From the NCBI GenBank assembly GCA_047495785.1, contig JBLDXI010000085.1, positions 186,001 to 250,000 on the forward strand: DNA of 64,000 bases, in the 5' to 3' direction. This DNA comes from Lepidodermella squamata (lineage: Eukaryota; Animalia; Gastrotricha). Position 1 is the first letter of the stretch. Every line of letters starts with the position of its first letter. Position numbers and translations under genes: made by a program. The notes under the pieces are model-generated. The model was not told where the DNA came from and did not search any database. It saw nothing but the letters and a program-made list of their open reading frames with translations. Positions 4,407-48,904 of this stretch are shown piece by piece.

Positions 4407-4952
4407 ATGAAGCAGTTACTTGCTGTCACACTATTTTTAAGTATCGTAGCCATATCCCGTGGAATAGTAAGTGGCTTCTATTTTATTAACTCATTCCCAT
4501 CTAATAGCATACACAATTGAAGGACCCGGAGCTTGAAGATGTCCTCTGGCAATTGAACGATGCGATTCTTGCGAATCAAGGTCTCCCTCCAGTAAGTTTT
4601 CGAGAAATATCGCCATTAAATGTGTAATACCCCTTGTTTTCTAGGCCGACCGCAGTGTCCCACTGAAGCTATGCGGCGTTCCGGATCTGGAAACCGCGAA
4701 AGCAAAACTGAGGCGACAACTGGCAATCGCGGATGGCGATGAGCCATTTGTGGCCGGTGTGAAATTGGATGCCCAACGCTGGGAATTTCCTATCAAATAC
4801 AAAATCAGTGCCGCATACAGTTAGTTGCACGTTTGTCTACCGCGCTCCTTCTAGGCTAATTTTTTCAACATGAATTTCAACATGAATTTCAACATGGATC
4901 ATCGGACAATTTCGCTGACAGTCTTGCAGCATGCAAAGCAGCCAACATATGA
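4407..4952 (+). pseudogene. Astacin gene A2, internally deleted (exons 1-3 plus a remnant of the last exon)
   Basis: MKQLLAVTLFLSIVAISRGI | DPELEDVLWQLNDAILANQGLPP | ADRSVPLKLCGVPD...WEFPIKY. Intron 3 then runs into GGATCATCGGA...GCAGCATGCAAAGCAGCCAACATATGA, the terminal exon of the paralogues. Catalytic and all middle exons are absent. Confidence 0.85.
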
Positions 4953-6169
4953 CATTGATCTTGCAGTTATGATAAAACAACAAATCGAGTGACTATTTCC
5001 CTCATTTCCTCATTCTTTATTGACAAATAGCTGCCGATATTGATCAGTGATTAATAATGCTTCCTGAGCTTCGCTTATTATTGTGATTCGCTTATTCAAA
5101 TTATTTGGATTCGCTCAGAAAAATATATTTTTGCTTGTATAAATAGTAACACCTATTTTCTCAGGTATGAAGTAAATCATCGCTTAAGCCTAAAATTTAA
5201 ACCTTTCGATCATTTTTGTTCTGAGAGCTAACAGTTAAGAGAACTTGAAAGGGCTCTTTTACGATCCAACGGTCTTTTTGGTATTTTTGGTCAACAGCCT
5301 CTCATGCAAAAGGGCATCTTACCAGTCAAAAGATATGTGTAGACCTGGGATGCACCAAGCAACGACATACAACTATTCATCTTTTGTTTAGCCTAGATTT
5401 CAAGACCATGGCTAGCATCTGTGCGTAAAGCAGTGGATGGTGAAGAAGATGCAGCAGCGTCCCAAAACAACCAAGCTAAGATTAATTTTACGTTTGCTTT
5501 GAGTTGAAATGATGCAAAGACTGAGTACTCCCAGAAGAGATCCATTTGAGACCAGCCAAGAGCCAAGAAAATAGGAAGACTGTAGGGATACGCGGCTGAG
5601 TCTGAGTCAAGGAGCTGTGTGAAAATGCATCAGGCAGTTTTTCAAATCCCGCAGCCTGTACAGATTTTTTTATTCTTATAGATTTTACCGCAAAGCACCA
5701 ACATACCCGAACAACACCGAACAAAAATTCAGACCAAACTTTTGGCGTTGTTCCGGTGTTAAAACATGGAAGCGGAAAACCTTCGGACAAACCGATTTCA
5801 CCCCTTTGTTCGGCATAGCAAAAATGCCGGTCTGGGTAGCGATGAATCATTTTTACGTCGCCAAATGTTAGTTGCCAGGGCGACGTTGGTTAGCCACGTT
5901 GTTAGGGCGTCACTATGAATAAAAATATGGAAAATTCACCAGAATGTGCAGCTCAAGAAGTTAATAAATGATATTTTCTGATTACGTCGTGAATTCACAG
6001 AAAAATTTATCAGACTCAAGAATGCTGTTCTAGAAAAAACTCCAAAAAACTGGATGTTGCAAAATTACCTTGGGTACAGGAAAATTACCTTAGATGCTTG
6101 TTTTCCGACTCGCATGTATGCGACTCGATTGGCGCTGAAAATACCGTCGCAATGATGTAGCGTGGGTTT

Positions 6170-6538
6170 TAGCTTTAATAATTTTGCAGCTTCAGGAGAG
6201 GTTGATTGTCATATTCCGTCCTGTTTCTAGTCATTTCAACATGAATGAAGGTCCAATTGATACTGGGATACTGGGATCAAGCTAAAAGCCTCAGCAGTTC
6301 CTTCTTTGCTTTCCAAGCTCAGGATGATAATTTATTTTCAGACACTATAACTGATCAACCCGTTGTTCGATGCTACAAGACATCGAATGGTAACTTCAAA
6401 ACGTTAGATTCCGTTTGCCGCAATGACGAATTCCAGGTACAGAAAACCTCCAAATTTGTCAATATTATAAAAAAATAATTGTGATTTCAGAATGGCCCAA
6501 CGTATTTCTTCAAAAATCTGGCTGTTTTTTTTAAATGA
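6170..6538 (+). pseudogene. Orphan degenerate astacin-tail exons (repeats 3-4)
   Basis: TITDQPVVRCYKTSNGNFKTLDSVCRNDEFQ | NGPTYFFKNLAVFFK-stop is homologous to the repeat 4 exons, with Cys losses and a premature stop. Confidence 0.75.
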
Positions 6539-7267
6539 GTAGCACATTCCACGATAATTAATGGCATGTTCCACAGATTTTTTCTAATTTCAAATAAACA
6601 TCGAGAAAACATTAACGCGTTAAAACTGAAAAAGGTCTTGAATAGTCGACAAATTTTCGTTCAGGCTTTGATACGCTGTGGTTTTGGAATCAAACTGATG
6701 CCGAAGTGATAATGAACAAATTGTCAGGAAACCAGGACATTTTTCGGTTCGATAAATACAGATGAATAATATAAATTATGGTGGAAGAGCTTTGATGCAT
6801 TGAATAAGCGGGAAATGATGAAATCAATTTTTAAAATTGAGCGTATTCATTACCAGCTAGGGGACCCTTTAAATGCCCTGCCCTTACTATTATCCTTTTT
6901 TCATGACGTTGACCTAATAATCGGTCCGTTTTAGTTATCCTTAAACCGGTCTGGTTTGGACAACTTAAACTGTTTTCAACAAAAAGGAATTAGAAAATTG
7001 TTTCAGATGAACCAGTCGTTACACGTGGCTGACTTGTCCGTTATGGTTTGATCGCCAACCTTCAGGATCTAGTAACGTATGTCGGACGCACATAACGTTA
7101 GTAAACCACAAGGGTTGACGAAAAACCATAACGGACTTGCACTGTGTAATCGGACTCGTTGATTGATGGCTTCATCAGGTGACTGCAAAGCACGCGCTTT
7201 TTTACGTGAAGCATACCAAAAGCCTGCGCTTTTTTTTATTCAATTTAATTTAATTTTATTTGTAGAA

Positions 7268-10200
7268 ATGAAGCAGTTGATTGTTGCCACCCTGCTTTTC
7301 AGTTTTATAACAAATTCGCAAGGAATTGTGAGTGGCTATATTATCTATTAATTCTTCTCAATTTATAAGCGCATGTTTTGCAGGATCCGGAGCTTGAAGA
7401 TGTTCTATGGCAATTGAACGATGCGATTCTTGCAAATCATGGGCTTCCACCGGTAAATTTACGTAGTATCGCTGTTAAATGTTAAATGACTATTATATTC
7501 TAGGATGATCGTAGTGTCCCACTGAAGCTATGCGGTGTTCCGGATCTGGAAACTGCGCAAGCAAAACTGAGGCGACAACTGGCAATCGCAGATGGCGAAC
7601 CATTTGTGGCCGGGGTGAAAACAAATGCCAAACTATGGGAATTCCCTATCTACTATAAAATCAATGAATCTCCGCCATACAGTTAGTTGAACGGTTGTTT
7701 AATGGCCTCGGTTTTTCTAGGTTTAGGTTTGAGGTTAATGTTAAGGTTGTGAGTTCGGGCATTGAGGAAGGCGATCGAAAAGTCACCCGCCCCTCAACTG
7801 AATCTTGCTTTATTTATCTGAACCAAATATTAGAGACCGATTTACAAGATTTAAAACAATGAAATATATTTCTCTATGAATCAACGAAGTTTTTTGGACT
7901 AACAAATTCGACATTTTCGCTTTTCGAGACATTTCGAATCGAATTGGCTGAAATGGCTTCATTTTTTGGTCTTCAATATTCAAATTTACGACCTCTAACC
8001 ACTGATATTTATTCGGAGTAGATAGCTTTTTCGGGCAGTACGGTACCTTTTAACAAATTATCCACGTTGAAATGTCGGTTTTTTTCATTGCAGCCGCCGA
8101 TGAGCAAGTAATCATCCGTGCAGGTATGGATCGTTGGGAGGAGCTAACATGTGCCCGATTTATCGAAATTCCCAATCTTGCGGCGGATCAGAGCGGTTTA
8201 AATATCGTTAAAGGATCAGGGTGAGCAATTTTCTTAAATTATTCATAGAATTATGTCTCGCGGCCGTTTTGAAGGTGCTTGTCGTTTATTGGGAGAATCG
8301 GGGAATCGGGGAAACGACAAGACTTGACTCTGGGAGGCGGTTGCATGGCGGTATCTATCAATTTCTTGCAAATTTGCTCTTTCAATGAACGCAACGATCT
8401 TTCAGGTATTCATTGTAGCTCACGAAATCGGCCACGCTTTGGGAATGGTTTGATTTATTGATTATTCAAATACCAAGGTCTTATCCTGTATGTTTTACAG
8501 GAACACGAGCATTCAAGGGCGGATCGAGATGACTACATCCGCGTCAATTACGAGAACATTATGGCGTAAATTCTTTTGAAAATTCAAATTTTCAGTCATA
8601 ATTGATATATTTTTGCATTTTAGTGGCAACGCTTACGCATTTGATATCGAACTGAACGATGAGAATTACAATGTGTCGTACAATTATGATTCTGTCATGC
8701 ACTACGGATGGGACGCTTTTGCAAAGTCGAACGTGCGAACCATAGAAACAATTGATAAGCGATACATGTACACGATTAATCAGATGAATTACATCTCTTT
8801 CGGAGATGCGAAAAGAATTAATATTCGATATAATTGTGGTAAGTTAAATTGCACCAAAAAATGCATAAAAATATTTGATCATTTGGCTGTTAAGTTCAAA
8901 CCCCCAAATTGAATATTTTTCCCTTTAAATGAAGAAATCTGAGGAAAAGGTATTTATTTTCTAATTTTCATCTTAAATTCAGTAACTATTTGTTTCTTAA
9001 ATTTTTTAAATAATGTTGGAACTTCCCAAAATTTGCTATTGATAATTTCGAATTTTTAAATTGAGGATAATTCTCTTATTCGATTTCGTTCACGTTAACT
9101 TCCGAAATCTCCGTTTTTAGTCGAAACTTCATGCAACAGCAAGCCTTTACCTCAGCCATGCCAAAATGGTGGCTATCAGAGCCCGAATAACTGCTCGAAG
9201 TGCCTCTGCCCAGATGGTCTAGGTGGCGATTTCTGTGAGTCCTACGCTCCATACAAAGGCCCAGTTCCATGCGGCGGCTACGTCGATGTAAAAGCTTGCA
9301 GCTACACTTTGATCACCTCGCCTGGCCACCCAAACATCTACGACAAGAATACGGCTTGTAATTGGTGGATAAGAGCGGTAATTGTTGCATCAGAGTTTAA
9401 TCAATTAATCTACGCCATCATTTTACCCAGCCCGTTGGAACTGGATTAGTTTTCGCCATCGAGAAGACACCCAATCTTCCTAACGATAATTACTGTAAGA
9501 TACTGTTGGGCACTTGCCGGCATATTCTGACTGTTTTTCTATTCTAGATCAGACGAGTTGCGGAGATTACGTTTCGATTCGTGATTACAGCAGTATTGAA
9601 AAATCAGCAATGAGGTTCTTAAATCAGTCATTGGTTAGTTTAATTCATCAATTTTTTCCAGGTTTTGCAGTGACAGCATTTCCAATGGTCGAGTGTATTC
9701 AACTGACGACAATCAAGCAATAGTCACATTCGCAACTCAAGGCTTCTCGAGTACCAGCACAGGGTTCAATTTGACCATTTACGCTACGTGCCCGGGTACA
9801 ACAGCCACTACGCTCACAAAGGAGTGTCGAATTACCGAGAGCGGTCGCGATTATGAAGGAACGAACGTTACTGCGTCTTCGTTGGGGGAAGCTTGCACTT
9901 CATGGTCCAGCAAGTCAAACGTGAAAGATTTGCAACTTCCAATGGGTGATGTCAACGCGTCGGCGAGTGCATGCCGTGCGTTCAACAGTGGGGATAAGCC
10001 TGTTTGCTATGTCGCCGATGGTTCTTATAAGCCATGCGCACTAGTCGATAAATGCCCAGCAAGTGAGTTCATAGCTTTCAAGAGCGCCTTATGTATACTA
10101 ATAGTAGTACGAATTCTTTTCTTATCCCTACTGAACATTTTGGCGATTTTGAAAGGTTTGGCCAACAACATTACAGAGGTGCCTCAGAGGGCCTATTGGC

Positions 10201-16896: not shown

Positions 16897-19800
16897 GGGT
16901 GTGTTGGTACTTCCGCGCGGCTAAATCCGCACGGTAAACATCCGCACAAAAATTTTCCACACAAGGTATTTGCACACATGGTGTTTCCGCGCACTCTGTT
17001 TATTTATTAGATTACGGTTAACATGCACGAAAAAAATCAGTCAAAATCAGTCAAAATTAAATCAATCGTCGAGCTCAATCGGCAAATAGAAATTGACCTC
17101 GTCATTATCACCGGCATCAGTCTCGTGGTGGCCGTTGTAGAACTCAGCAACTTTCACCTCCTGAGGAAAGACTAAGGCTATGTCGGTCATGTTGGCGGCG
17201 CACGCGTCCAGGAAGTCCATGAATCCGATCTTGCCCGCATCGAGATCCTCCCAGAGCCGTTGCATTGAGGCGTTGAGTCGCTGGAATTTTTTGCTTGACC
17301 TGGTTTTGTACGTTCTCGCATCGACTCGAGCCCAGTCGCGACGGGTGATGGCTTCTTCCCGGATTAGCAAAGCTGAAAATCGCCAAATATTGAGGTGGAC
17401 TTTCTTCGCAATTTTGCTGATACGGGAGTTCCACCCTAGAGTGACAAAGTGGAAATAAATAAGCATTAATTATACACAAAATACTCACCTTCTACAATGT
17501 TATTCGTTCTGATGTCCCGGCGATGCACATTCCAAATAGCAAGATCAAGCGTATTAAGCCAAAAGTTTTCGAAATAAGTAAGGAATTCGACTAGCTTAAC
17601 ATTATCCGGCGTAGCCTTAACTTCAGAGAAAATGGCAGCAAATGCCGGGCGAACCATGTCGACAGGTAGCAGAGGTAAACACATAACACGTCTCACCGTC
17701 TTACGCACAAAGCCGCTCGGGTTTAGATAGGCAATTTTCAACCCATGAGCGCAAACCCATTTGAATAGGGCCTGTTTAAAGTGAAATAGACAACCAATGA
17801 TTGCAACATGATGGAAAACAATCCTAATAGCCCGCAATAGTCCACTTTCGAAATCACAGGTTATTTCACGCAAGCGAGGAGGATGGCCAAGAATAGAGGT
17901 AATTTCCCTCTTCAAATATAGCAAGACGTTTTCATAAAGGCGCGAATACTTATTAGACATGAGAACATAAGCACAGGGTAAAATAGCGCCATTTATCAAG
18001 GCATGAATAGTAAACAATTGATAAAATAAATCATTTGGCACAATTGAGAAGGTCCCATCAACGAACCAGCTCGAGCTCGACCCGTCGTCGCATTTCAGCC
18101 CGCGTGACTTCAGCAGCAACAACCTCATAGTTCGGCAGATCTGTGTGGTAATTCTTGACGCCAGCAAAGTTGCCATCGCAATCGAGAAGGAGGAGGGCCG
18201 AGCAGTGCGCTTGGGACTAATACTGTATGGACTCGACACTAGCCACTTTTCTGCTGGACAGGAAAAAAATCAATAATTTTGATGCGAGAAAATCACATGA
18301 AAAAATGTGTTTTTTTACGCATTAAAGGCACCATTTTTACGCATCCGCCAGTTACAAAGCCAAAAACAGGACAAGTTTCACGAGAGTACCGTATGGGCAA
18401 GTCATGCCGATGGATACAGACTGAATTTTTATGAATATCGATAGCTCAAGTCACGATCTTTGCAACAGTGCCAAATTCAAAATTTTATGACTTTGCTGTG
18501 ATTTTACTTTGAATTTTACACACAAATTGCCATTTTTGAGGAAATAAAAAAATGGCAAAAAATTATTCAATGAGTCATGAATATTCTCTCGCATTTTTTT
18601 CTGAATAAATAAATAAATAATTCGGTTCTATTTTTAAAAATTTTTGCTCATTCTGGTAGAAACATCAATTTAGCTAAGTAAATTCATCAGCCAGTAGGTC
18701 ATGGTTTATAACGTTACAAAGGTCCTCTCATGTAGAATTCGGCTATGTAAAATTAATTGCAATCCGAAATAAAGGTAAGGTGTGATACGGTACCGACGGG
18801 ACGAGACTTCGATTCTTCCCAATGTGATGGGTGCATGCGTAAAAAAGGTTCTCATAAAACGTCATTTTGCGATTTTTTTCTCGCGATTTTTGAACGACTT
18901 TACGATCACGATTCTTCGGACGGTTTTTTGCGTCCAGCAGGATTTTAATGGAGAGATACTAGCAGTGTCGAGTCCATACAGTATTAGTCCCAAGGCAGTG
19001 CGAGCATCGCCACGCGTTACGGCCGAGTACGAAACGGTAGACATAACCACGGCATCCAATAGAAGGCGTGCCCTTCGTATTCGCGAAGCGGTAGACGTTT
19101 CGATCGAAAGGCAACTCTTTCCTTTTCTGCTGAAAATGCATAAGAAAGGATATATAAAATTCCCAAAAAAATAATTGAAATTTAAATTTAAAATTCAGAT
19201 TGGATTTAATGATTAAAATTATCAATTTTCAATTTCTAAAATCAAGGTAAAAATTCTGAAAAATCTTATTACATCTAAATTCTGGTCGGCTGCTGTAGCG
19301 TTTGCTTTCTGCTCGGTAACTTGGGGTAAGTTTTCGTAGGGAGTAGCTGGCAACTTCTCGGATCGCAACGTTTGTGGACGAGGAGGTAAAGGCGGCGGTC
19401 TCGCGGGTAACAGTGGCGGGCTTTGATCTTCTAACTGAGGCGGGGGTGTTTCCGGCTCACGAGGCGGCGGCGTGGGCGGTAACGAAACAGTCGTCATGTC
19501 TCGCAAAACCGGTTGAACGGGATCAGTCATTTTTGGACCTAGATAATGAGAACAAGAATTTGGGAAAAAACCCATTTTCACGTTTTTACACACCATTTTC
19601 CGCGGTCTTCCTCGGCCGCGCTCGATTGGAGGTGATAGCTCAGGTTGAAAAATCAGGCAATATCTCAGTTGTAGCTGCCGTTATTGGTTCGGCTATCGCT
19701 ATTACTACAAAAAGTTCAGTAAATAAAAAATCACATGTTTTATTTGTCTATTTTTCTCGCTAGAATGTACGATTTTACTACTTATCAGATTCAAAAAAGA

Positions 19801-24384: not shown

Positions 24385-27300
24385 ATGAAACGGATACTAG
24401 CCCTCGTACTACTTGTTAGCTTCATAGCAAATTCCCTAGGGATAGTAAGTACTCTCTACTTGCTGTTACCTATCAACAACCATTTGGTTTCCAGGACCCG
24501 GAGCTTGAAGATGTACTCAGGCAATTGAGTGATGCGATTCGTGCCAATAACGGTCTGCCACCGGTAATTTCTCGAGAAAAATTCAAAATTGAAATGGCTT
24601 TCATTTTATTTTCAAGGCTGGCCATAGCGTCCCACTTAAGCTGTGCGGCATTCCAGATCTGAAAACCGCGAAAGCAAAGCTGAGGCGACAGCGAGGCGAT
24701 GCTGATGCTGAACCATTTCTGGCCGGTGTGAACTCGAAAGCCAATTTATGGACTTTTCCCATCCGATACAAACTCGAAAATACATACAGTCAGTTTAACA
24801 GTCATCTTCACTTTTTTCCATCTTGTCCTTATATAAGACTATTACAGCGGTTTTCAATTTTTTAGGTCCTATTTTGAGCTTAATTATCCTTTCATCGAAT
24901 ATTTTTCCATATTTTTCCGAATTTTTTGTTTATTTACTTTATTTACTATCATCGGTGAGGCAGCAAAAGTCAAATTTGTTATCATTTTATTTTCCACTTT
25001 AATCCGGATTTTTAAATAAATAAAAAAATAGGTGCCGATCAAAAAGCAATCATCCGCGCCGGTCTTGATCGCTGGGAACAGCTTACATGTGCCCGCTTTG
25101 TCGAAGATCCCAATCTGTCGAAAAATAAGACTGGCCTCAATGTCTTCAAAGGATCTGGGTGCGTCAATTTCTCATATTATTTTCTTGACCGAATAAACAT
25201 CTTGACTAATTCTTAGGTGCTGGTCTTGGATTGGGATGGTGAACGATGGACAACTGCAAGATGTGTCTCTGAGTGACAGCTGCATGGAGGTATCTATCGC
25301 TTCCTTCTTGAGCTGTGTTTCCATTTGAAAGCATCAACCATATAGGAAATCACTGTAGCTCATGAATTCGGCCACGCTCTGGGAATGGTTTAGTTTCTTT
25401 GCTATTAAAATACCAAGGTCCTAACCTCAATGTTTTCAGGAACACGAGCAATCGAGAACAGATCGCGATAACTATGTCCGAATTAACTATAAAAATATTA
25501 TTCCGTAAGTTTTGATAAAAGCTATGTTAAAAACCGGCGTAATGACTAACATCTGGTGTTTCATTTCAGTGGCTATGAATACAACTTCGACATTGCCCTG
25601 AACGATGAGAATTACAATGTGCCTTATACCTACGATTCAATCATGCACTATGCATGGGACAGTTTCGCCAGCACCCAAGGCGTGCGAACCATCGAGCCGT
25701 ATGATAAGCGATTCCTATTCACTCTTCATCAGCATAACTACATCGCTTTCGGAGATGCGAAAAGGATTAACATACGGTATAATTGCGGTAAGTGTATTTC
25801 ATTTTCCGGCTTCATTTTACGAATATTTATTATTATTTTTCAATTATTTTTTTTAGTTAATTTTTTTATTAATTTTTTAATCGTAAGTAATTAATTCGTC
25901 ACACTTTATTTTGTTCGAACTTCCAACAAATTTGATGATTGTTATTTCGAATTTTTTTAAATTGATGATAATTCTTAGCTTTGGTATTCTTCCAAGTTAA
26001 CTTCCCAATTAACTGCTTTCAGTCGAAACGTCATGCGATGGCAAGCCTCTACCGCAACCTTGTCAGAACGGAGGCTATCAGAATCCGAATGACTGTTCCA
26101 AGTGCCTATGCCCAGATGGTCTAGGTGGCGATTACTGTCAGACCTACGGCCCATACAAAGGCCCCGTTCGATGCGGCGGTTACATCGATATAAAACCTTG
26201 CGGCTACAATTCGATCACCTCACCTGGTTACCCGAAACAGTACAACAAAGATTCGGCTTGCAACTGGTGGATTAGAGCGGTAAATTCTCTATACATTGTG
26301 TCGACCTCTTAACCTATAAGTTTATACTTTCAGCCTGCTGGATCTGGTTTGGTCTTCGCCTATGAAAAAACACCCGAGCTTCCGATCGATAGATTCAGTA
26401 AGAAGAAGATAGGAAAATATTCTTATATTATCTGAGTGTTTCCAGATGGGAAAAGTTGCGGAGATTACGTTTCAATACGTGACTTGAGCAATGTCGATAG
26501 ATCAGCAATGAGGTTTTTGATTTTTTCTCGGGTTTGTTGGTGCGATGTCGCTTTATTTTCCACAGATTTTGCACCGCGAGCGTTTCCAATGGTCGCATGT
26601 ACTCAACCAACGACAATCAAGCCATTGTCACATTCGGAACTCAAGGCTCCTCGCGAGGCAATATCGGGTTCAATTTGACCATCTACGCAACTTGCCCGGG
26701 TACAACGGCCAGCTCGCTAACCAAGGAGTGCCGGATAACGGAGAGCGGCCGTGACTATGAAGGCCTGGGTGTTACTGTGTCTTTGACGGGTCAATCCTGC
26801 ATGCCGTGGTCTAGCAGATCGAATGTGAAAGACCTGCGACTTCCAATGGGCGATGTTGCTGCGTCCGGGAAAGCTTGCCGTGCTTTCAATAACGAGGACA
26901 GGCCTGTGTGTTATGTTGCCTCAAACGCATATAGCCCCTGCCGACTCGTCCCCAAATGCCCAACTAGTAAGTGTTTTACAGCCGCAATTTAGGGCTTATT
27001 TTCCTAATCACAATTCTCGGAAAATCAGCTTGCTCGTGAAAGCTAGTAGGGTGCCCAAAAGCTTAACTTGATATAGAAAAGGGTGGTTTTTCTAGTTTGG
27101 TTACACAGCCTACATTGATTGGACACCGATCCTACAAAGAAACCTCTTTCCATCCCTGGCAGCTCAAAGAATCACACCCTTGGTTTAAGGTTCTCCAACC
27201 TATCTCATATATTTCTTGGTTGCCTTGGGTACAAACCAGCAATAGACTAGCGTTATCGGTTCTCCCTGTCTCTCATGCCAAACTTAGCAACTCCTTTTTT

Positions 27301-33919: not shown

Positions 33920-36900
33920 ATGAAACCCTTGTTTGTTATCACACTGTTGATCAGCTTCGCGGTAATTTCTCAAGGAATTGTAAGACATTTCACCCATTGA
34001 TAGTATAACACTACTTATGTGTATCTTACTAGAGCCCGGAGCATGAAGAAGTTCTTTGGGAGTTGACTGATGCGATTCGTGCGAAACATGGTCTGCCACC
34101 GGTTAATTATCGAAAAATATCTTGGATTCAAATATTTGATCAATCTCAATTACCAGGCTGATCGTAGTGTGCCATTGAGTCTATGCGGTATCCCAGATCT
34201 GGATACAGCGAAAGCACTACTCAGGCGAGAACTGGCAATCGACGATGACGAGCCGTTTGTTGCCGGAGTGAGGTCGACGGCTAACTTGTGGACTTTCCCT
34301 GTTCGATTCAAATTCGATCCAGATGCTTATAGTGAGTTGAGCAACTTTGCCAAGAGGGGTATCGTACCCCCAGTAGGGGGGCCAAGGTGGAAAATATCAA
34401 ATATGGGCCTGAAAAACCCTAGTTGGAGGATCCTACTTCGCGCACCGGAAGACTAAAGACTTTTATAGAATTTAATTCAATTATTTTCGGAATTTAAAAT
34501 GTGAAATTCGACGAATTTCATACTCAATGGTCTTGATCATCAACTGCGACTTTCTTCTGAAATAATGAGAATTTTATAAAATTATTGCTAGTTGTTACCT
34601 ATAACGTCATCTCGTTATTTCCTAGTATAATTGTCGGACCAAAATAACTATTTGTTTCTAGGGAATGAATCGATGGCGACCATCCGCTTGGGTATCAAAC
34701 TATGGGAAGAACTCACATGTGCTCGGTTTGTCGAAGATCCTTCTCTGCCGGAGAACGAAACGGGCATCTATATCAGAAATTCGGGCGAGTGCGTCGATTT
34801 TTGTCTGATTTTAATTCGACACATTTCAAGCCCTTCAAATCTCTTAGTTGCTCGTCATTGATTGGTAGGTTTCCCGACGGACGGCAGGACATTTCTCTCG
34901 GTCTTGGGTGCGTTGAGGTGAGCATTAGTCGAACCATTAGGTTCTACAACTCATCGATAACTTCCTCTGTACTGCTGTCAACCTAGCCGGGAATTATAGC
35001 TCACGAAATCGGCCACGCTTTGGGACTTGTCAGTTTTTTTTATTGCGAATTGCTTCGATGAATCTTTGAATTTCTTTAGAACCACGAGCATTCTAGAATC
35101 GATCGTGACGAATACGTTCGAGTTATTTACGAAAACATATATGAGTGAGTTTTTTGAAAGCATTATGTAGTAATTTGGTGGGAACATTTTCGTTTGCATT
35201 TAGGAGCTATGCTATCCAATATGAAAAGGACCTGGCAGACGAAAATTACAATATATCGTATGTTTATGATTCTGTCATGCATTACTCTTCGGGCGCGGCC
35301 GCCAAAACATTCGGGTTGCGAACCGTCGAGCCGAAAGATAAACGGTTCTTGTACAACTTGGGGCAGCGGCAGAACATCGCCTTTGGTGACGCAAAGCGAA
35401 TCAACATCCGGTATCAATGCGGTAAGCAGATATTTGTTGAGACTGGACTTTTCTAGTTCTAAAGTACAGCAAAACAGTTGAGTAGTTCTCTAAGGGCCTG
35501 AAATTGAAGGAATACCGTAACGAGGAGAATCTGTATACGAAAGGTTTTTCTCGAACAAGGAAAATTAGCATTTGCCCAAATTTCCACCGAAAAAAGGGCA
35601 AGGTGATTCTTGAATATATTCTAAAATTTCATCCGGCTGGCTAGGAAAAACCTAAAAAGCGGCAGAAATTAGAGCGGGGTGCTCTATAAAGTCCAAAATG
35701 ACCCGATTTGACACGGAACGCCCTGTGGAAACCAATCGTTGATTTTTCACTTTCTTCTCGTATTTTTTATTGCTAATTTCTTTTCTAAAAATGCGACATT
35801 TTTTCTCAGTGGAAAAATCATGCGCCGGAAATCCGCCACCTCAACCATGTCAGAATGGAGGCTATCAGAACCCGAATAATTGTGCCATGTGTCTATGCCC
35901 ACCTGGTCTTGGTGGCGATTTCTGTGAGACCTACGCTCCACACAAAGGCCAAGTGCCTTGCGGGGGTTACGTTGATGTAAACCCGTGCAACTACACTTCG
36001 ATCACATCGCCTGGTTATCCGAACCCCTTTGCTCACAACACGGCCTGCAACTGGTGGATCAGAGCTGTAATTATTTTTACGGCATCCATTTTTTTATTGT
36101 TTTATTTACTCCTTTTCTCTCAGCCTGGTGCAACTGGATTGGTTTTCGCCTTCGAAAAGAAACCCGATATTCCAAAGCCAGAATTTAGTAAGGATCATGC
36201 AATTACTTGAACATTTTACATTCCTATGATGTTTCAGCTGAAGAGCTTTGCGACGATTTCGTTTCGATACGTGATTTTAGAAATATTGATAAATCTGCAA
36301 TGAGGTAAGTAGGGATATTTGTCAATTTAGATCGCACTGATAATACCCCTTTTCACAGAATTTGCTCTCCCGCTATTTCAAACGGTCGGATTTATTCAAC
36401 TGACGACACTCAAGCAATAGTCGTATTTAGAGGCGACGGCGAGTCGCTTAACGCTAAGGGCTTTAAATTGGTCATCTACGCAACGTGCCCGGGTACGACG
36501 GCCAGCTCGTTAACCAAGGAATGTCGAATTACCGAGAGTGGTCGCGACTACGAAGGCCTGGGTGTTACTGTGTCTTTGACGGGTCAATCCTGCAGGCCGT
36601 GGTCTAGCAAGGCGAACGTGAGCGATTTGCAGCTTCCAATGGGTGATGTCAACGCGTCTGCGAATGCTTGCCGTGCGTACACTGGCGGTGATAGGCCTTC
36701 ATGCTACGTCGCCCCAACCGTTTATAGCTCATGCAGCCTGGTTCCTAAATGCCCCACAGGTAAGATTCTGCATGTGCACTGCTCGCCGCTCCTCTTGTGT
36801 TGTGAGGGCTGTCTCAAGCCCAATTCGGCCTGTTTCGGCTATATTGCAAGGGTTGTGGAAAAAAATCAGTCTCAATTTGGGTGCCTTCCAAGCTTAGTAG

Positions 36901-38487
36901 ATTGAGAATTTCCTTACATGGTGACGGGTCATGTATTTTGGAGGTCACTCTAAGAAATATCCTGCGAGTTCAAATCCCGAATCCCATTTTTTCCATTTTC
37001 ACCAATTTCGAAATCCCGAAATTCCAATTTCGAGCTTTTTTCACAGAGTTCGCGAATTAGAAGAGAATCCTCGAACTAGGAGCCCAAATTGTATGACCAA
37101 AGTTTCCCCCAGTCTTTGATGTTCCGGATTTTGCCAATTCTGAAGTTCAATCTGAATGTATTGAACATTTTGTTATAATTTTCAGAAACGAATTACACGG
37201 TTCCAGTGCCACCTCCGGACACAAATTCAACTGTACCAAATCCACCCAATAACACCAATTCCAGTGTACCAAATCCACCTACGGACACAAATTCCACGGT
37301 GCCAATCTCAAACCTATCATACCAAAGGTGTTTCCTGAAGAGCACGGACGACTTCTCTAAATGCCGCGTGGCAATCTCATCTTCCCAAGTCTGTCGGGAG
37401 TTTGAGTACTTGGTAAGGCTATTCATTCATAATCTATGTTGCTGTTGCAATCGCGATTTGTACGATTTCAGGGTGGAAACTTCTCAAGCTTTGATTCTTG
37501 TCAGATGGGTGTAAGTATTGTTAAATGCTAAAACCTCACGAACTATGATAGGTTTTTTGTGTTTCAAACAGCCTGTGAGCTACTGCTTTTCAAACGCAAC
37601 TGCAGACTTCAAATGTCGCCTCGGTGATTGCGAAATGAACGAAACAAGAGTGGGATCAAAATTTAATAAAAAATCAGACGGATATATATTTTATTTCAGA
37701 TCAAAATCTTCTCCAGATCTCGATTTTTCGCCGGCGAAAATTTAATGGACTGCCGCAACTTGGCTTCACCGGTACTTTGGGATAAATTTAATTTCCAAAT
37801 TAGGGAACTTTTTGTAATCTCCAGATGGAACACCTCCGTTGCTTCAACCCTAATTCCGAGAAAATTGCCTGCCGACCTTTTGATGGCTGCATGCCTAGAG
37901 AGGTTAATTGAATTATTTGCTGTCCTATTCTTAGAAATGTTGTTTAGGATCAACTCGGCGGGTACAACGATCGGGCTAGTTGTTTGAACGGTGAGGATTA
38001 TACTACATTATCTGCCCAGGACTGAATAAAATCATTATTTTTAGATACTATGGCTGATGAGCCTGTCGTTCGCTGCTACAAAAAGTTGGGTGGAAGGTTC
38101 GAAACGTGCCGACCTGTTTGTCAAACTGACGAATTCCAGGTGAAAAATGCGTATATAAGTTTCAAGAATTACTAACGGCTGATAATGATTTCAGAATGGC
38201 CCGGTCTATGTCTTCAAAAATCTTGCGGTTTGCCTGAAAGGAGTTTCGTTTATCCAACTTATGTTTCGATGTTATAAATTATTCATGATTTTTCAGGGCG
38301 CCAGGCTGTGTAAGCGTCGAAGCCAGAATTACTGCTCTGGTTCAAACAGATTCTGTAAAAAACAGGTGAATTTGAATAATTTTGCCCCAATTCAACCATG
38401 CTAATCGTTCGATAATAGATCAAGATCTTCGGATCATCGGAGCTATTTGCCGACAATCTCGCAGCATGCAAAGCAGCCAGCATTTGA
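33920..38487 (+). CDS. Astacin metalloprotease A5 (second EGF replaced by a Pro/Thr/Asn-rich linker)
   Basis: Signal MKPLFVITLLISFAVISQG; LCGIPD; HEIGHALGL|NHEHSRIDRD; YDSVMHY; EGF, CUB, kringle, linker, five repeats; frame open to TGA at 38485-38487. Confidence 0.88.
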
Positions 38488-41400: not shown

Positions 41401-42204
41401 TATATAACCTTGGTGAAATTATTATCAATATTTCGGCCAAATCAGAGAATGGTCTTTTTCCAGGTCATCCCGATTGGGCGCACGCCCTACTTTTGCGGGT
41501 TGCTTTATTGGGGCAACAGTGCCGCTGCGCGCAATCGATATATTTATATTGATTGTGATATATATGGTTTCGCAGACGGTCCGGTGCGTAAACATCAGCG
41601 CGAATTTCTAGGATCTAGGACATGTCGTTGAGAAGTACGGATGCCTTCGCGTCCATTTGACACCATGTCATTCGCTCAGTATTCAATGAGTCATTTAAAG
41701 CCATACAGAGCACTCAATTCTGGCACATGAAACATCTGCTGAGTATCCATAGTGACAATCCAAACCGTGGACACTGCTTCAACTAACAACTTCGAAAACC
41801 GACATTCGAATGGAAAAAAATGAAAATATGAAATAAGACCATCCCTGTTCCTTTTTTAAAGTGGATACACCGACTTTCATTCGCAAAACTTTGAATTTTC
41901 CTGGAAATTTGTATGGCTTGAATATATTTGAAAATACCATAGAGCAAGGTTAAACCTATGCTGATTCATACTTCTCAGTTTATTTGTGAAGTTTGGCTTC
42001 ATCTCAGACGACATTCAGTGCCTAAATTGTGACTTCAATAGATTTTAGATCCTGTCCAAAAATGGCTAATTTTATTATGACTTGTTGCGATCAAATAGAC
42101 TGGAACTATGGACGTCGATCATGCCTAGTTTGCATACGGCACGCGGCCTCAAAATTACTAAAATTTTCCGACTATGCGTTTTGCGCCAAGTCCACGACAG
42201 AAGT

Positions 42205-43153
42205 AAATGTGTTGGTAGAGAGATCGATTGCGAAATTCTTCGCCGACGATACGAAGCTATACCGGGCGATCCGTTCTTTAAGCGATTGCATCGAACTGCA
42301 GAAAGACTTGGATGAAATCATCAACTGGTTTGACGCTAACGGCCTGTCTGTGAATTCGAAAAAATGCGTCGTGCTTATACTCGGGCAAAACAAATTTATG
42401 TTCAAATTCAAAATTAAAGATGTCGAGCTTGATGTTGTGGACTCAGTGAAAGACCTCGGAATAATTATTGATAAAAATCTCACCTTCTCTGAGCACTGTA
42501 ACGCATTGGCAACTAAATGCCACAGAATTAACGGTGTTATTTGTAAATCGTTCGCCTCTAAATCCTTACGTCTCAAAGCCTATAAAACGTATACTTTATC
42601 TCGTCTTGACTTTTGCCCGTCTGTTTACTCGCCTTACCTAATAACAGATATTGAAAAGGTCGAATCTATTCAAATCCGCTTCACAAAACGTTTGCTATAT
42701 CGTAGTACCTACTACTCATCGATCGAAGGCTCCTCCTATGAAGAACGACTAAAAAAGCTTGGGTTGTGTTCACTCGAATTAAGACGCTACCAACACGATC
42801 TTGCGTTATGTCATAAAATGTACCAGCGTGCTGTGGACTTAAATTTCTCTGACTTCTTTAATATTTCCACTAATCCGCGCTTACCGCATCATTCTGTTAC
42901 GATGGAAAGCTACAGTCATGCCAGCTCTCAGTTTTCATTTGTGAGGCGAGTGCGTCCAGCTTGGAACCGGCTACCATCTTCCGTCGTTAATAATTCGTAT
43001 TCTTCATTCTTGAAATATCTTAAATGTACTGACTTGGAAAAATTCACAATTTCTGTGGTGAGGCGCCATAACTTAACGTTTTGTTAATTCCTAATTGCTA
43101 AATGTCGAAAGACAAATTGCAAAATAAAACAGTATCAGTATCAGTATCAGTAT
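42205..43153 (+). mobile_element. 5'-truncated non-LTR retrotransposon (CR1/L2-like LINE ORF2 C-terminus)
   Basis: RT motif FFADDTKLY..LQKDLD..W..N.L.VN.KKC..KDLGIIID..LTFSEH; C-terminal IEKVESIQIRFTK..SYEERLKKLGLCSLELRR..WNRLP. The 3' end has AATAAA then (CAGTAT)4 at 43130-43153. The 5' boundary is approximate. Confidence 0.9.
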
Positions 43154-43366: not shown

Positions 43367-44782
43367 ATGCTTCGAATTGCTGTAGTGATTTTCTTTCTTT
43401 CTGCTGGGGCCGATGCGATCGGTTATCGCTACTCAAAACCTCGTCTCAGTCCAGACGGCGAGGCTAGACAGCTCGAAGATATCGACCCAGGCGAGCCGCT
43501 ATTCCTAACACCATACATCAAATCAAACCAAAGCATGTACGCCCAAAAGCTGGCAGCAGTCGTGCCATTAGCTCCATTCGCTCCTCGAAGCTACTCCGGC
43601 TTCATCACCGTGGACAACGCGACCAATACGAACCTTTTCTTTTGGGTTGTTCGGTCGTCCCACAATGACGGCTGGACCCCATTGATTCTGTGGCTGCCAG
43701 ACGGCCCTGGAACCTCTGGAATGTTCAGTTTCCTCAACGAGCATGGCCCGCTACAAATCGACAAAAACCTGAAACCGTCCAAGCGATTGAACTCTTGGAC
43801 AGATCGTTACAGTGTGCTCTACGTCGACAGCCCAGTTGGGAGCGGGTTCTCCTTCACAGATTCGAAGGACGGGTATCGGCTGAATGATACAGCTGTAGTA
43901 GACCATCTTTACGAATTCCTACTTCAAATCTACACGCTACTCAAGCCTATGCGAGATTTCCCGTTTTACATAGCTGGTGAAGGTTATGCTGGCAAATATG
44001 CGTCTCTTCTTGCTAAGAAAATGTTCGACATGGAAAGCATAAATAGCGGCCTCCTACCTAAATTGCAAGGAATTTTACTTGGAAACTCGTTTACAGACCC
44101 AGCTTCAATATTGAAAAGCTACCCTGATTTTTTATTAAGCCGGGGATTGCTGACCCAAGGTCAGAAAACTCATTTCAAACAACAGACTGACCTTGCGATC
44201 GATTATGTTAACACCGGTAGCTTCAGTTCAGCTTTTTCGATCTACGACTCTTTGATCAATGGCGATTTATTTGAATATGGCTCGTATTTCACGAATTCTA
44301 CCGGTTGTTCTGGGTATTTCAACATGTTGAACTGCCAGGATTCGCCTGATTTAGGCTATTGGGCGCCATTCTTGGACCTTAATTCAACTAGAAAGGCTCT
44401 CCACGTTGGATCGACCCCTTTCAATCCTCATTCGAAGCTCGTCGAGCAGTTATTGGTTGGCGATATCATGAAATCGGTCAAGAATGAGGTCGAATACCTC
44501 TTGAACCACGTTCCAATCATGTTTTACACCGGGAATCTCGACATTATTGTCCCAACACCCGGTATCGATGCTTTTTTGAGGTCGTTAACTTGGACTGGGT
44601 CGAACAACTGGCGATTTTCTAACAGGACTATTTGGACTGACCCTGATGATGAAGCTTGGGTCTATGCGAGTAATCATGACACATTGACTTATGCTGTGAT
44701 AAGAAATGCCGGGCATTTAGTAGCCTATGATCAGGCAAAGACTTTCTATTTGTTGGCCAGTCAGTTTATTGGCGATTGGTGA
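43367..44782 (+). CDS. Secreted serine carboxypeptidase S10 family protein (CPVL-like), intronless, catalytic Ser replaced by Gly
   Basis: 471-aa ORF with a signal peptide and motifs GEPLFLTPYI, SYSGFITV, NLFFW, PLILWLPDGPG, YVDSPVGSGFSF, FYIAGEGYAGKY, GNLDIIV, RNAGHLV. TATATAAA at 43319; AATAAA just after the stop. Confidence 0.93.
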   Translation: MLRIAVVIFFLSAGADAIGYRYSKPRLSPDGEARQLEDIDPGEPLFLTPYIKSNQSMYAQKLAAVVPLAPFAPRSYSGFITVDNATNTNLFFWVVRSSHNDGWTPLILWLPDGPGTSGMFSFLNEHGPLQIDKNLKPSKRLNSWTDRYSVLYVDSPVGSGFSFTDSKDGYRLNDTAVVDHLYEFLLQIYTLLKPMRDFPFYIAGEGYAGKYASLLAKKMFDMESINSGLLPKLQGILLGNSFTDPASILKSYPDFLLSRGLLTQGQKTHFKQQTDLAIDYVNTGSFSSAFSIYDSLINGDLFEYGSYFTNSTGCSGYFNMLNCQDSPDLGYWAPFLDLNSTRKALHVGSTPFNPHSKLVEQLLVGDIMKSVKNEVEYLLNHVPIMFYTGNLDIIVPTPGIDAFLRSLTWTGSNNWRFSNRTIWTDPDDEAWVYASNHDTLTYAVIRNAGHLVAYDQAKTFYLLASQFIGDW

Positions 44783-47114: not shown

Positions 47115-48904
47115 TACTGAAAAATCTTACCGATCTTACGAGCCGATTTGACATTTGACATTTGACTGTTAACTCTCTTCGTGTTGAATATTGCTGCAAT
47201 GTATTAACAATTTATTTTGAGAAATTCTATGCCTTGAACTCAAATACTTACGATATTAATTGTGAAAATAAAATATTATGTTTGGTCCGACGCCTTTCAA
47301 TCCTCTCTCTAAGCTCTTCGCCCCTCATTTTTGGCCACGGAGAAAATAAAACTTGTGAACAGTGGCGTTTATATGACCTTCTAAACTGCTTTTAGACCTC
47401 ATCATCGTAGATTTTGACGCCTTAGGAATACCCCAGACGCTACTGCATATTTACCTGCTACAGTTTCCGTTGGATAAAAACTCCGTGTTGAAACAGGGAC
47501 TCTATACCCGGCATTCTAACGTTGATAGTGGTTAAGGTTTAGTGCTCTGGCTAAAAATCAGATGCGATATTCGTGCGTCGGTTCAATTTCTACTGGCTAC
47601 TTTCAAAGAACAATTTTGCAGAGACTCAATGATGCCAGGTTCAGCAACCAGAAAATTCATCCATTCCAGCAGGCGTCAGTCGTGTAACGGTTTGGCATGG
47701 TTGATGGTTGCCTTCCAAGAAGAATCATCTGGCTCACGACGTAGACCCGACTAGTAAAATTAACGCTGATATTCCCCAAATCAGACTTCGAGAGGTCCCA
47801 TGATTCACCTCAACGCGGTCAAAACTCAAAAGACAACTAATGCACCTCGCAAAGCATCTAAAGCTTCGCAAAAGAAGCAGAGAAAGGTCGAGGTTGCTGA
47901 GGGACGGTAGTTTCACATTTTCGCTATTTCAACAATTGCTTGAATTTCGAAAGCCCCAGATTTTTGGAAATTTTTGGAAATTTCATGATTTACCGGTGTC
48001 AATTATGATTGATTTGATTGATTGATTGATTGATTGATTTGGTTCCGTGAAAATAGGTCATTGGTTGATTTTGATTGATTGAAGGAGGTCCGTGATTTAA
48101 GTGGCAACGCAAATACAATCAAATCCAAAGCTCTGACCCTCAGCAGGACTGAAACCGACGCGCAGATCCCGCACTAAACCTTATTCACTAATAATAATTG
48201 CCCAATGATTGCTCAGTATACGAAAATAATAGTACTCAAATAGCACAACTACGGGGCAGCTATGGTAGCGCTACGGCGACTGCTATTTCAGCGCTACCAC
48301 AGTGCTACGTAGCATTTTCGCGTGCTACGGCCAGCTCAAAACATGATAACCGTAATGGGATTTTCACGAATTTTCGCATACACCGTCGATATGAGGTAGG
48401 CTACCTGAAAACAAGTCGAAAACTGAAAAACACAGTTAGGATACGAATTTTCGAAAAGTCAGCATGTAGCCAGCTGAATGGCTTGGGCTGAATGTATATC
48501 CGTAGCGAAATCGTCATTCTCGTTTCCGCCTTGTTACTGTCGACCTCCAGGTGGTGATTGAATACATCGTTTCACGGTTATACATGCTTTCAAACCTTTT
48601 CAAGAGCGGGACTGTAATCTGAAGCCTTTGCCTGATTTTTCATTAATGTTAATGTTTACCTTTTATCACCGGTTCATATTAATCTTATTGGCCAATCCGT
48701 ATCCCTAATTGGTGATATGATTTTTTGTTAGATTTCATGAATTTGAAGTCAAGGGGAATTTTCTATAAGTTACGGAATCGCTACGGCGCCGTAGATGACC
48801 GGCCGTACCGGCACCGTAGTTGCGCCGTAGTTGACCGTGCCGGCAGTAAGGTGCGAGTGCTATTATTTTCGCCGACAAGCTTGAAAGGTCTGAACAACAC
48901 GTTA

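Follow-up and report, generated by a model that had tools for sequence, protein, structure and literature searches.

We describe here a tandem array of genes for secreted astacin (M12A) zymogens from the gastrotrich Lepidodermella squamata, and a short cysteine-bearing motif, L-C-G-[VI]-P-D-L, in the prosegments that they encode. The window, by which we mean the whole stretch of 64,000 nucleotides analysed (contig JBLDXI010000085.1, positions 186,001 to 250,000), is eukaryotic DNA with 41% G+C and numerous short GT-AG introns of about 50-70 nucleotides. It contains three complete astacin genes, A3, A4 and A5, and a partial one, A2; a tblastn search of the window with the A3 protein recovered A4 and A5, with shared intron positions and intact catalytic motifs, together with the partial A2. 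The splice models are based on conserved GT-AG borders, on intron phases and on homology. In each zymogen a signal peptide and a prosegment of about 58 residues precede the catalytic domain, which is followed by EGF-like, CUB and kringle-like modules and then by a Cys-repeat tail. The motif is real and selected, and the hypothesis that it forms a cysteine switch is mechanistically plausible. A weak tblastn match at 47613-47839 was considered as a further astacin remnant and rejected.

The A3 model has eight exons on the forward strand, all with canonical borders (7268-7327, 7384-7452, 7504-7681, 8094-8220, 8275-8350, 8406-8447, 8501-8565 and 8624-8838). Exon 1 runs from the ATG to a GTGAGT donor and encodes the signal peptide MKQLIVATLLFSFITNSQGI; exon 2, whose AG/GT borders and phase 0 are conserved in all four copies, encodes the N-terminal part of the prosegment, DPELEDVLWQLNDAILANHGLPP. 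The interval singled out by the original prediction, 7504-7681, is exactly exon 3, bounded by an AG acceptor at 7502-7503 and a GTTAGT donor at 7682, and by gene model and alignment it encodes the C-terminal part of the prosegment and the first 24 predicted mature residues. Within this exon lie the motif L52-C53-G-V-P-D57-L58 (7528-7548, with the Cys codon TGC at 7531-7533 and the Asp codon at 7543-7545), the tripeptide L65-R66-R67 (7567-7575), which is invariant in the alignment and a candidate for the first, dibasic activation cut, and the predicted mature N-terminus A79-G-V...W88 (7609-7638), which places Trp at position 10. Exons 4-8 (8094-8838) encode the astacin catalytic domain, as indicated by the gene model, PF01400 matches of exon pieces and PDB matches, and hold the intron-split zinc motif HEIGHALGMEHEHSRADRD (8421-8530) and the Met-turn SVMHY (8691-8705). 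The signal peptide, prosegment and catalytic domain of A4 (24385-25787) and of A5 (33920-35421), both on the forward strand, were placed by tblastn and gene modelling. In A4 the motif is LCGIPDL at 24641-24661, the zinc motif HEFGHALGMEHEQSRTDRD at 25361-25469 and the Met-turn SIMHY at 25637-25651; the corresponding elements of A5 are LCGIPDL at 34181-34201, HEIGHALGLNHEHSRIDRD at 35002-35109 and SVMHY at 35271-35285.

By every catalytic-domain criterion tested, A3, A4 and A5 are bona fide astacins. All three have the extended zinc motif HExxHxxGxxHExxRxDRD, in which the third His is followed by the family-specific Glu, and the Met-turn SxMHY with its zinc-binding Tyr; the general-base Glu, the zinc ligands, RxDRD and the Met-turn Tyr are intact throughout. 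Pieces of the A3 exons matched PF01400 with 24.0 and 50.8 bits (cut-off 22.5) and in the correct profile order, and the last A3 catalytic exon matched hatching enzyme and meprin beta chains in the PDB. The four Cys of the A3 catalytic domain (residues 122, 146, 168 and 277, or mature positions 44, 68, 90 and 199) have equivalents in A4 and A5 and correspond to the two disulfide positions of astacin (Cys42-Cys198 and Cys64-Cys84); the same pairing is predicted from this correspondence. Only the prosegment motif of metazoan astacins is missing. The three enzymes are probably catalytically active, and because all their catalytic residues are intact they would need a latency device.

A six-frame scan of the window found CG[VI]PD at exactly four sites, all on the forward strand (4672-4686, 7531-7545, 24644-24658 and 34184-34198), and the back-translated DNA pattern TGYGGNRTNCCNGAY recovered the identical four sites against 0.01 expected from 100 shuffles. 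Each site falls in exon 3 of a tandem astacin gene, within the peptide PLKLCGVPD in A2 and A3, PLKLCGIPD in A4 and PLSLCGIPD in A5; the original prediction had given the same positions and peptides, and both scans agree with it. It had also described the motif Cys as the single Cys of each prosegment, and the gene models bear this out: the residue is number 53 in every copy, and no other Cys follows the signal peptide before the predicted mature start. The aspartate-switch signature F-x-G-D, said to be missing, is indeed absent from all four prosegments, and the window has a single match to F.GD[IL], which lies within an intron of A2 on the minus strand. L-C-G-[VI]-P-D-L is the only candidate zinc-blocking motif, and it stands where a latency motif is expected. 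Downstream of it, L-R-R and A-G-V-x6-W are invariant in the four copies. The predicted Trp at position 10 was thus found in each of them, with the mature start at AGV placed by its spacing to this conserved Trp; position 19 of the Pfam Astacin profile aligns 18 residues after W88. The last Arg of L-R-R lies 11-12 residues before AGV, a slightly narrower range than the 11-13 residues first proposed.

The copies of this motif have been kept alike by selection on the protein. The paralogs are old, with synonymous divergence (dS) of 0.5-1.9 overall and 1.0-1.9 between their catalytic domains, and their prosegments are 66-74% identical against 54-63% for the mature domain. Over the 12 codons around the motif, the ratio of non-synonymous to synonymous divergence (dN/dS) is 0.05-0.2, while 40-63% of the synonymous sites differ; the codons for the Gly, Val/Ile, Pro and Leu of the motif themselves differ between copies. 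Because codon usage at the motif differs in this way and synonymous divergence is high, the conservation of the motif reflects protein-level selection and not simply recent gene conversion. Apart from the exchange of Val and Ile, L-C-G-[VI]-P-D-L is invariant, while its flanks vary. A large diversity has been reported for astacin prosegments in general, with which the conservation among these paralogs contrasts (PMC9848320). The same data bear on the suggestion that a hexapeptide came to resemble that of the matrix metalloproteinases (MMPs) by accident in a single ancestral prosegment and was passed on to the paralogs without serving any particular function. The four copies do trace to a single ancestral event, and where many proteins are scanned chance matches to short known motifs are to be expected; but such low dN/dS values in the face of near-saturated synonymous divergence, and the invariance of every residue of L-C-G-x-P-D-L between variable flanks, make coincidence a very improbable explanation.

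A2 shows the same constraint in a shorter form. The original prediction counted A2 among the astacins that carry the motif; the motif is present in it, as in the other three copies (LCGVPDL at 4669-4689), but A2 consists of exons 1-3 only (4407-4819, forward strand), and tblastn within the window found no catalytic exons between it and the start of A3. These exons encode a signal peptide, a prosegment and the first 23 mature residues, and their splice sites are intact. Compared with A3, A2 has a dN/dS of 0.15 at a dS of 0.52, and identity is 86-87% in the exons against 64-73% in the introns; because dN/dS is this low and the exons are better conserved than the introns, A2 is under purifying selection. 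A prosegment that is maintained with its motif and lacks a catalytic domain of its own favours a function for the motif other than blocking zinc: Cys53 could form an inter-chain disulfide (in a zymogen dimer or with a partner, such as the neighbouring lectins) or pair with a Cys of the C-terminal modules, or the motif could serve as a recognition site for a processing enzyme. Against this stands the phase of A2 exon 3, which is compatible with A3 exon 4, so that A2 may be an alternative first-exon set for A3, supplying alternative prosegments. The DNA 3' of A2 (4896-4955 and 6310-6541) resembles the tail exons of other astacin genes, in a different order.

Whether Cys53 has a partner elsewhere in the protein bears on the same alternative. 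Since the four catalytic-domain Cys match the disulfide positions of astacin, Cys53 is left without a partner among them and is probably unpaired. Further Cys lie downstream. Exons 9-12 of A3 (9121-10062, forward strand) encode EGF-like, CUB and kringle-like modules, assigned by reading of the sequence and by Pfam matches below the curated cut-offs (CUB 17.5 bits; Kringle 25.9 bits, cut-off 34.3), and the gene extends past exon 12 into Cys-rich repeats. A kringle-like module follows the CUB module in each astacin (9663-10061, 26534-26992 and 36468-36905). Reading by eye finds a fifth Cys in the CUB module and a seventh in the kringle-like region. These extra residues, and a long Cys-repeat tail that was only partly modelled, could offer partners to Cys53 and favour a disulfide role; in A3 and A5, however, the two extra Cys have been kept as a set, and they are able to pair, and probably do pair, with each other. 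A second point against a role away from the zinc is that the motif sits at the place expected for latency in enzymes with no alternative zinc-blocking motif. Taken together with the possible use of A2 as a 5' cassette, these observations lead us to regard a motif that is functional without blocking zinc as improbable.

The Asp of the motif is the basis of a different explanation, in which an aspartate switch has been kept in a remodelled F-x-G-D-I: Asp57 would bind the zinc, and Cys53 would play a secondary part in second-shell contacts, in redox sensing or in a transient folding disulfide. Asp57 is as invariant as Cys53, and the order hydrophobic-x-Gly...Asp-hydrophobic can be fitted to FXGDI if Leu replaces Phe, Cys takes the x position, Val-Pro is an insertion, the Asp is kept and Leu stands at the Ile position. 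Moreover, the motif Asp is the ligand in all three metazoan astacin zymogen structures (PMC9629494, PMC9848320). On the other side, thiolate is by general chemistry a stronger zinc ligand than carboxylate, the C-G-x-P-D of MMPs presents its Cys to the zinc and not its Asp, and an unpaired Cys that never varies in a secreted protein calls for an explanation; in addition, the hydrogen-bonded i to i+4 turn by which Limulus pro-astacin holds its Asp in place (F35 O to I39 N; PMC9629494) would be disrupted by an insertion of two residues. We consider ligation by Asp57 unlikely, but it is the strongest of the alternatives. The only other invariant prosegment Asp, D73 in I-A-D-G, is an unlikely zinc ligand, as it lies 6 residues before the predicted N-terminus, whereas in Limulus pro-astacin the primary activation site is 11 residues after the zinc-binding Asp (PMC9629494). 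The original prediction had proposed a cysteine switch instead of the aspartate switch; the absence of FXGDI and the invariant, selected L-C-G-[VI]-P-D-L support it in part, and the word 'instead' may overstate the case, as Asp57 may still be the ligand.

We favour Cys53 as the zinc cap because catalysis is intact, FXGDI is missing, an invariant motif with the C-G-x-P-D core of the MMP switch stands at the expected place and the Cys has no evident partner, and we hold it somewhat probable that this residue ligates the catalytic zinc of the zymogen. In this model the prosegment would occupy the cleft in reverse orientation, as it does in other astacin zymogens, and the single unpaired thiol of Cys53 would replace the catalytic water on the zinc, giving a cysteine switch like that of MMPs and myroilysin. 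The first activating cleavage would fall 14 residues downstream of Cys53, at the invariant dibasic L-R-R, and would release the Cys-bearing piece; the remaining 11-12 residues would then be trimmed to A79-G-V, and the N-terminus newly formed at A79 could become inserted, its amino group pairing with the family-specific Glu that follows the third His. Both cleavage sites, at L-R-R and at AGV, are predicted, and the enzymes may be sensitive to thiol or redox reagents, as the original prediction proposed. The astacins of the array are probably kept latent in a manner that is undescribed for animal astacins.

Several observations weigh against ligation by Cys53. The Pro-Arg that precedes the Cys in MMPs is absent, K-L or S-L being found in its place, and the Arg-Asp salt bridge of MMPs is not conserved, as K51 is replaced by Ser in A5. 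The spacer between the motif and the mature N-terminus, at 22-26 residues, is about twice as long as in known astacin zymogens. The Cys count on which the unpaired state of Cys53 is judged covers the prosegment and the catalytic domain, and the parity of the long C-terminal tail was only partly counted. A search of sequencing runs found a single DNA run that contains the stretch, probably the source of the assembly, and no RNA run with the locus. Finally, the invariant Asp57 has been kept, and if the motif is taken as an F-x-G-D-I that has gained two residues, ligation by the Asp is possible.

The origin of the motif can be considered separately from its function. We regard it as an evenly balanced question whether a clade of metazoan astacins has independently evolved a true cysteine switch, with a C-G-[VI]-P-D core identical to that of MMPs. 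The suggestion that the switch was borrowed from an MMP is unsupported because there is no homology to an MMP prodomain: the similarity ends with the hexapeptide, P-R is absent, no MMP prodomain was found in the PDB at E<=10 and no Pfam match was obtained in the prosegment. Convergence, or a remodelling of FXGDI, is the economical reading.

Searches for relatives place the prosegment apart from annotated proteins. A profile built from the four exon-3 peptides was compared with 1.84 billion representative proteins and matched only one, P0001, through 11 weak matches to CGAPPSETGSAQLRR; this protein of 986 residues is built from a tandem repeat of about 90 residues rich in Arg, Ala, Gly and Pro, and the match was judged to be a repeat artefact. 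Leave-one-out trials give an expected score of 94-108 bits for a relative as diverged as the paralogs are from one another, with E about 1e-22 in a collection of this size, and the search reaches relatives with at least roughly half of the paralog-level similarity, unrelated astacin prosegments with C-G-x-P-D falling outside this reach. The wider protein collection includes annotated animal proteomes, several Diptera among them, and to judge from these comparisons no annotated protein in the searched collection has a recognisably similar prosegment. A word-index search with the exon-3 alignment gave no match, its candidates being limited to proteins of 32-103 residues, for which a blank is expected. 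The ESM Atlas returned only low-recognition fragment clusters for the exon, and none of the 600 pattern matches in a scan of JGI metagenomes was confirmed. In the PDB, the exon-3 profile gave only chance matches at E<=10, with no MMP chain and no myroilysin (5GWD) among them. A search with the exon-8 alignment found two marine astacin fragments from TARA with about 40% identity; the TARA astacin contigs, 2 kb long, contain no related prosegment. LCGVPD and LCGIPD are absent from the searchable literature, and within the searchable part of the literature on astacins and cysteine switches none is described in an animal astacin. Bacterial myroilysin, which the original prediction had cited as the known M12A example, is the sole case in that literature (PMC9848320, PMC9629494).

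The array has several neighbours in the window. A further astacin gene, A1, begins before the window, and its tail open reading frame is duplicated within 2 kb: identical frames of 141 residues at 42-467 and 1896-2321 each contain the end of a CUB and a kringle-like module. A transposase-like frame of 257 residues (17466-18239, minus strand) lies between astacin genes, and a reverse-transcriptase-like frame of 352 residues (42029-43087) is found just upstream of a single-exon serine carboxypeptidase (S10, CPVL-like) of 471 residues at 43367-44782. The best matches of this carboxypeptidase have only 38-41% identity and are spread over many animal phyla; the window's own carboxypeptidase is missing from the protein collection, and the genome of the window is therefore not represented there. 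In a synteny comparison, the carboxypeptidase locus of Culex had no astacin neighbour. A search of Rfam gave no match, and the Atlas pointed to no phylum.

Recent structural reviews name FXGDI as the only feature common to the prosegments of animal astacins, describe the aspartate switch as the mechanism of metazoans and give bacterial myroilysin as the sole cysteine-switch astacin. If the proposal made here is correct, Cys-Gly zinc caps would have arisen independently once more among the metzincins, and for the first time in animal astacins, and a whole tandem set of proteases would be controlled by thiol chemistry in addition to proteolysis. Asp- and Cys-based latency devices would then be seen to swap within one family in animals too, and the array would offer a natural case of sequence-level convergence on C-G-x-P-D, which would help to explain the fit of this motif to the metzincin zinc site. 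For annotation, rules for prosegments that are based on FXGD would misjudge these genes.

Comparison with zymogens of known structure shows what has been kept and what has been replaced. Structures are available for three metazoan astacin zymogens, and in all of them the prosegment passes backwards through the cleft and the Asp of F-E/Q-G-D-I binds the zinc (PMC9629494). With these proteins, crayfish pro-astacin (3LQ0), Limulus pLAST (8A28) and human pro-meprin beta (4GWM), the enzymes of the array have in common HExxHxxGxxHE, RxDRD, SxMHY and the two disulfide positions, as well as a short N-terminal prosegment and a mature N-terminus that is predicted to be buried, 9 residues before the conserved Trp. 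They differ from the aspartate-switch zymogens in the absence of F-E/Q-G-D-I, in place of which stands L-C-G-[VI]-P-D-L, in the length of the prosegment (about 58 residues, compared with 34 in astacin and LAST), and in the spacer from motif to cleavage site, for which the aspartate-switch zymogens have about 10-13 residues. Myroilysin is the closest parallel in kind, with an M12A catalytic domain and a Cys-bearing prosegment without FXGDI. It differs in being bacterial, in its prosegment of 37 residues, in its Cys, which lies in an extended stretch without C-G-x-P-D, and in a large flap that traps the prosegment (PMC9629494); no sequence relationship between the two prosegments was detected with the exon-3 profile in the PDB at E<=10.

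The switch of the ADAM and snake-venom metalloproteinases is PKMCGV. Like these enzymes, mirolysin and the unicellular pappalysins, the proteins of the array have a Cys-Gly in a short prosegment that would run backwards through a metzincin cleft; they differ from all of them in belonging to another metzincin family and in the residues that flank the dipeptide. Both astacin prosegments and the prosegment of mirolysin lie in the cleft in an orientation opposite to that of a substrate (PMC6949598). The resemblance to the MMP switch is closest at the level of the motif: the C-G-[VI]-P-D core is identical, a hydrophobic residue comes directly after it, a single, probably unpaired Cys is present in the prodomain of a metzincin, and a basic processing site lies downstream. 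It is bounded by the catalytic domain, which is that of an astacin and not of an M10 enzyme, by the lack of Pro-Arg before the Cys and by a prodomain similarity that stops at the hexapeptide. With P-R-C-G-x-P-D in the MMPs and a conserved Cys-Gly in the unicellular pappalysins (PMC6949598), the Cys-Gly dipeptide is the recurrent core of cysteine switches in these families, and it is this core that the prosegments of the array have in common with them.

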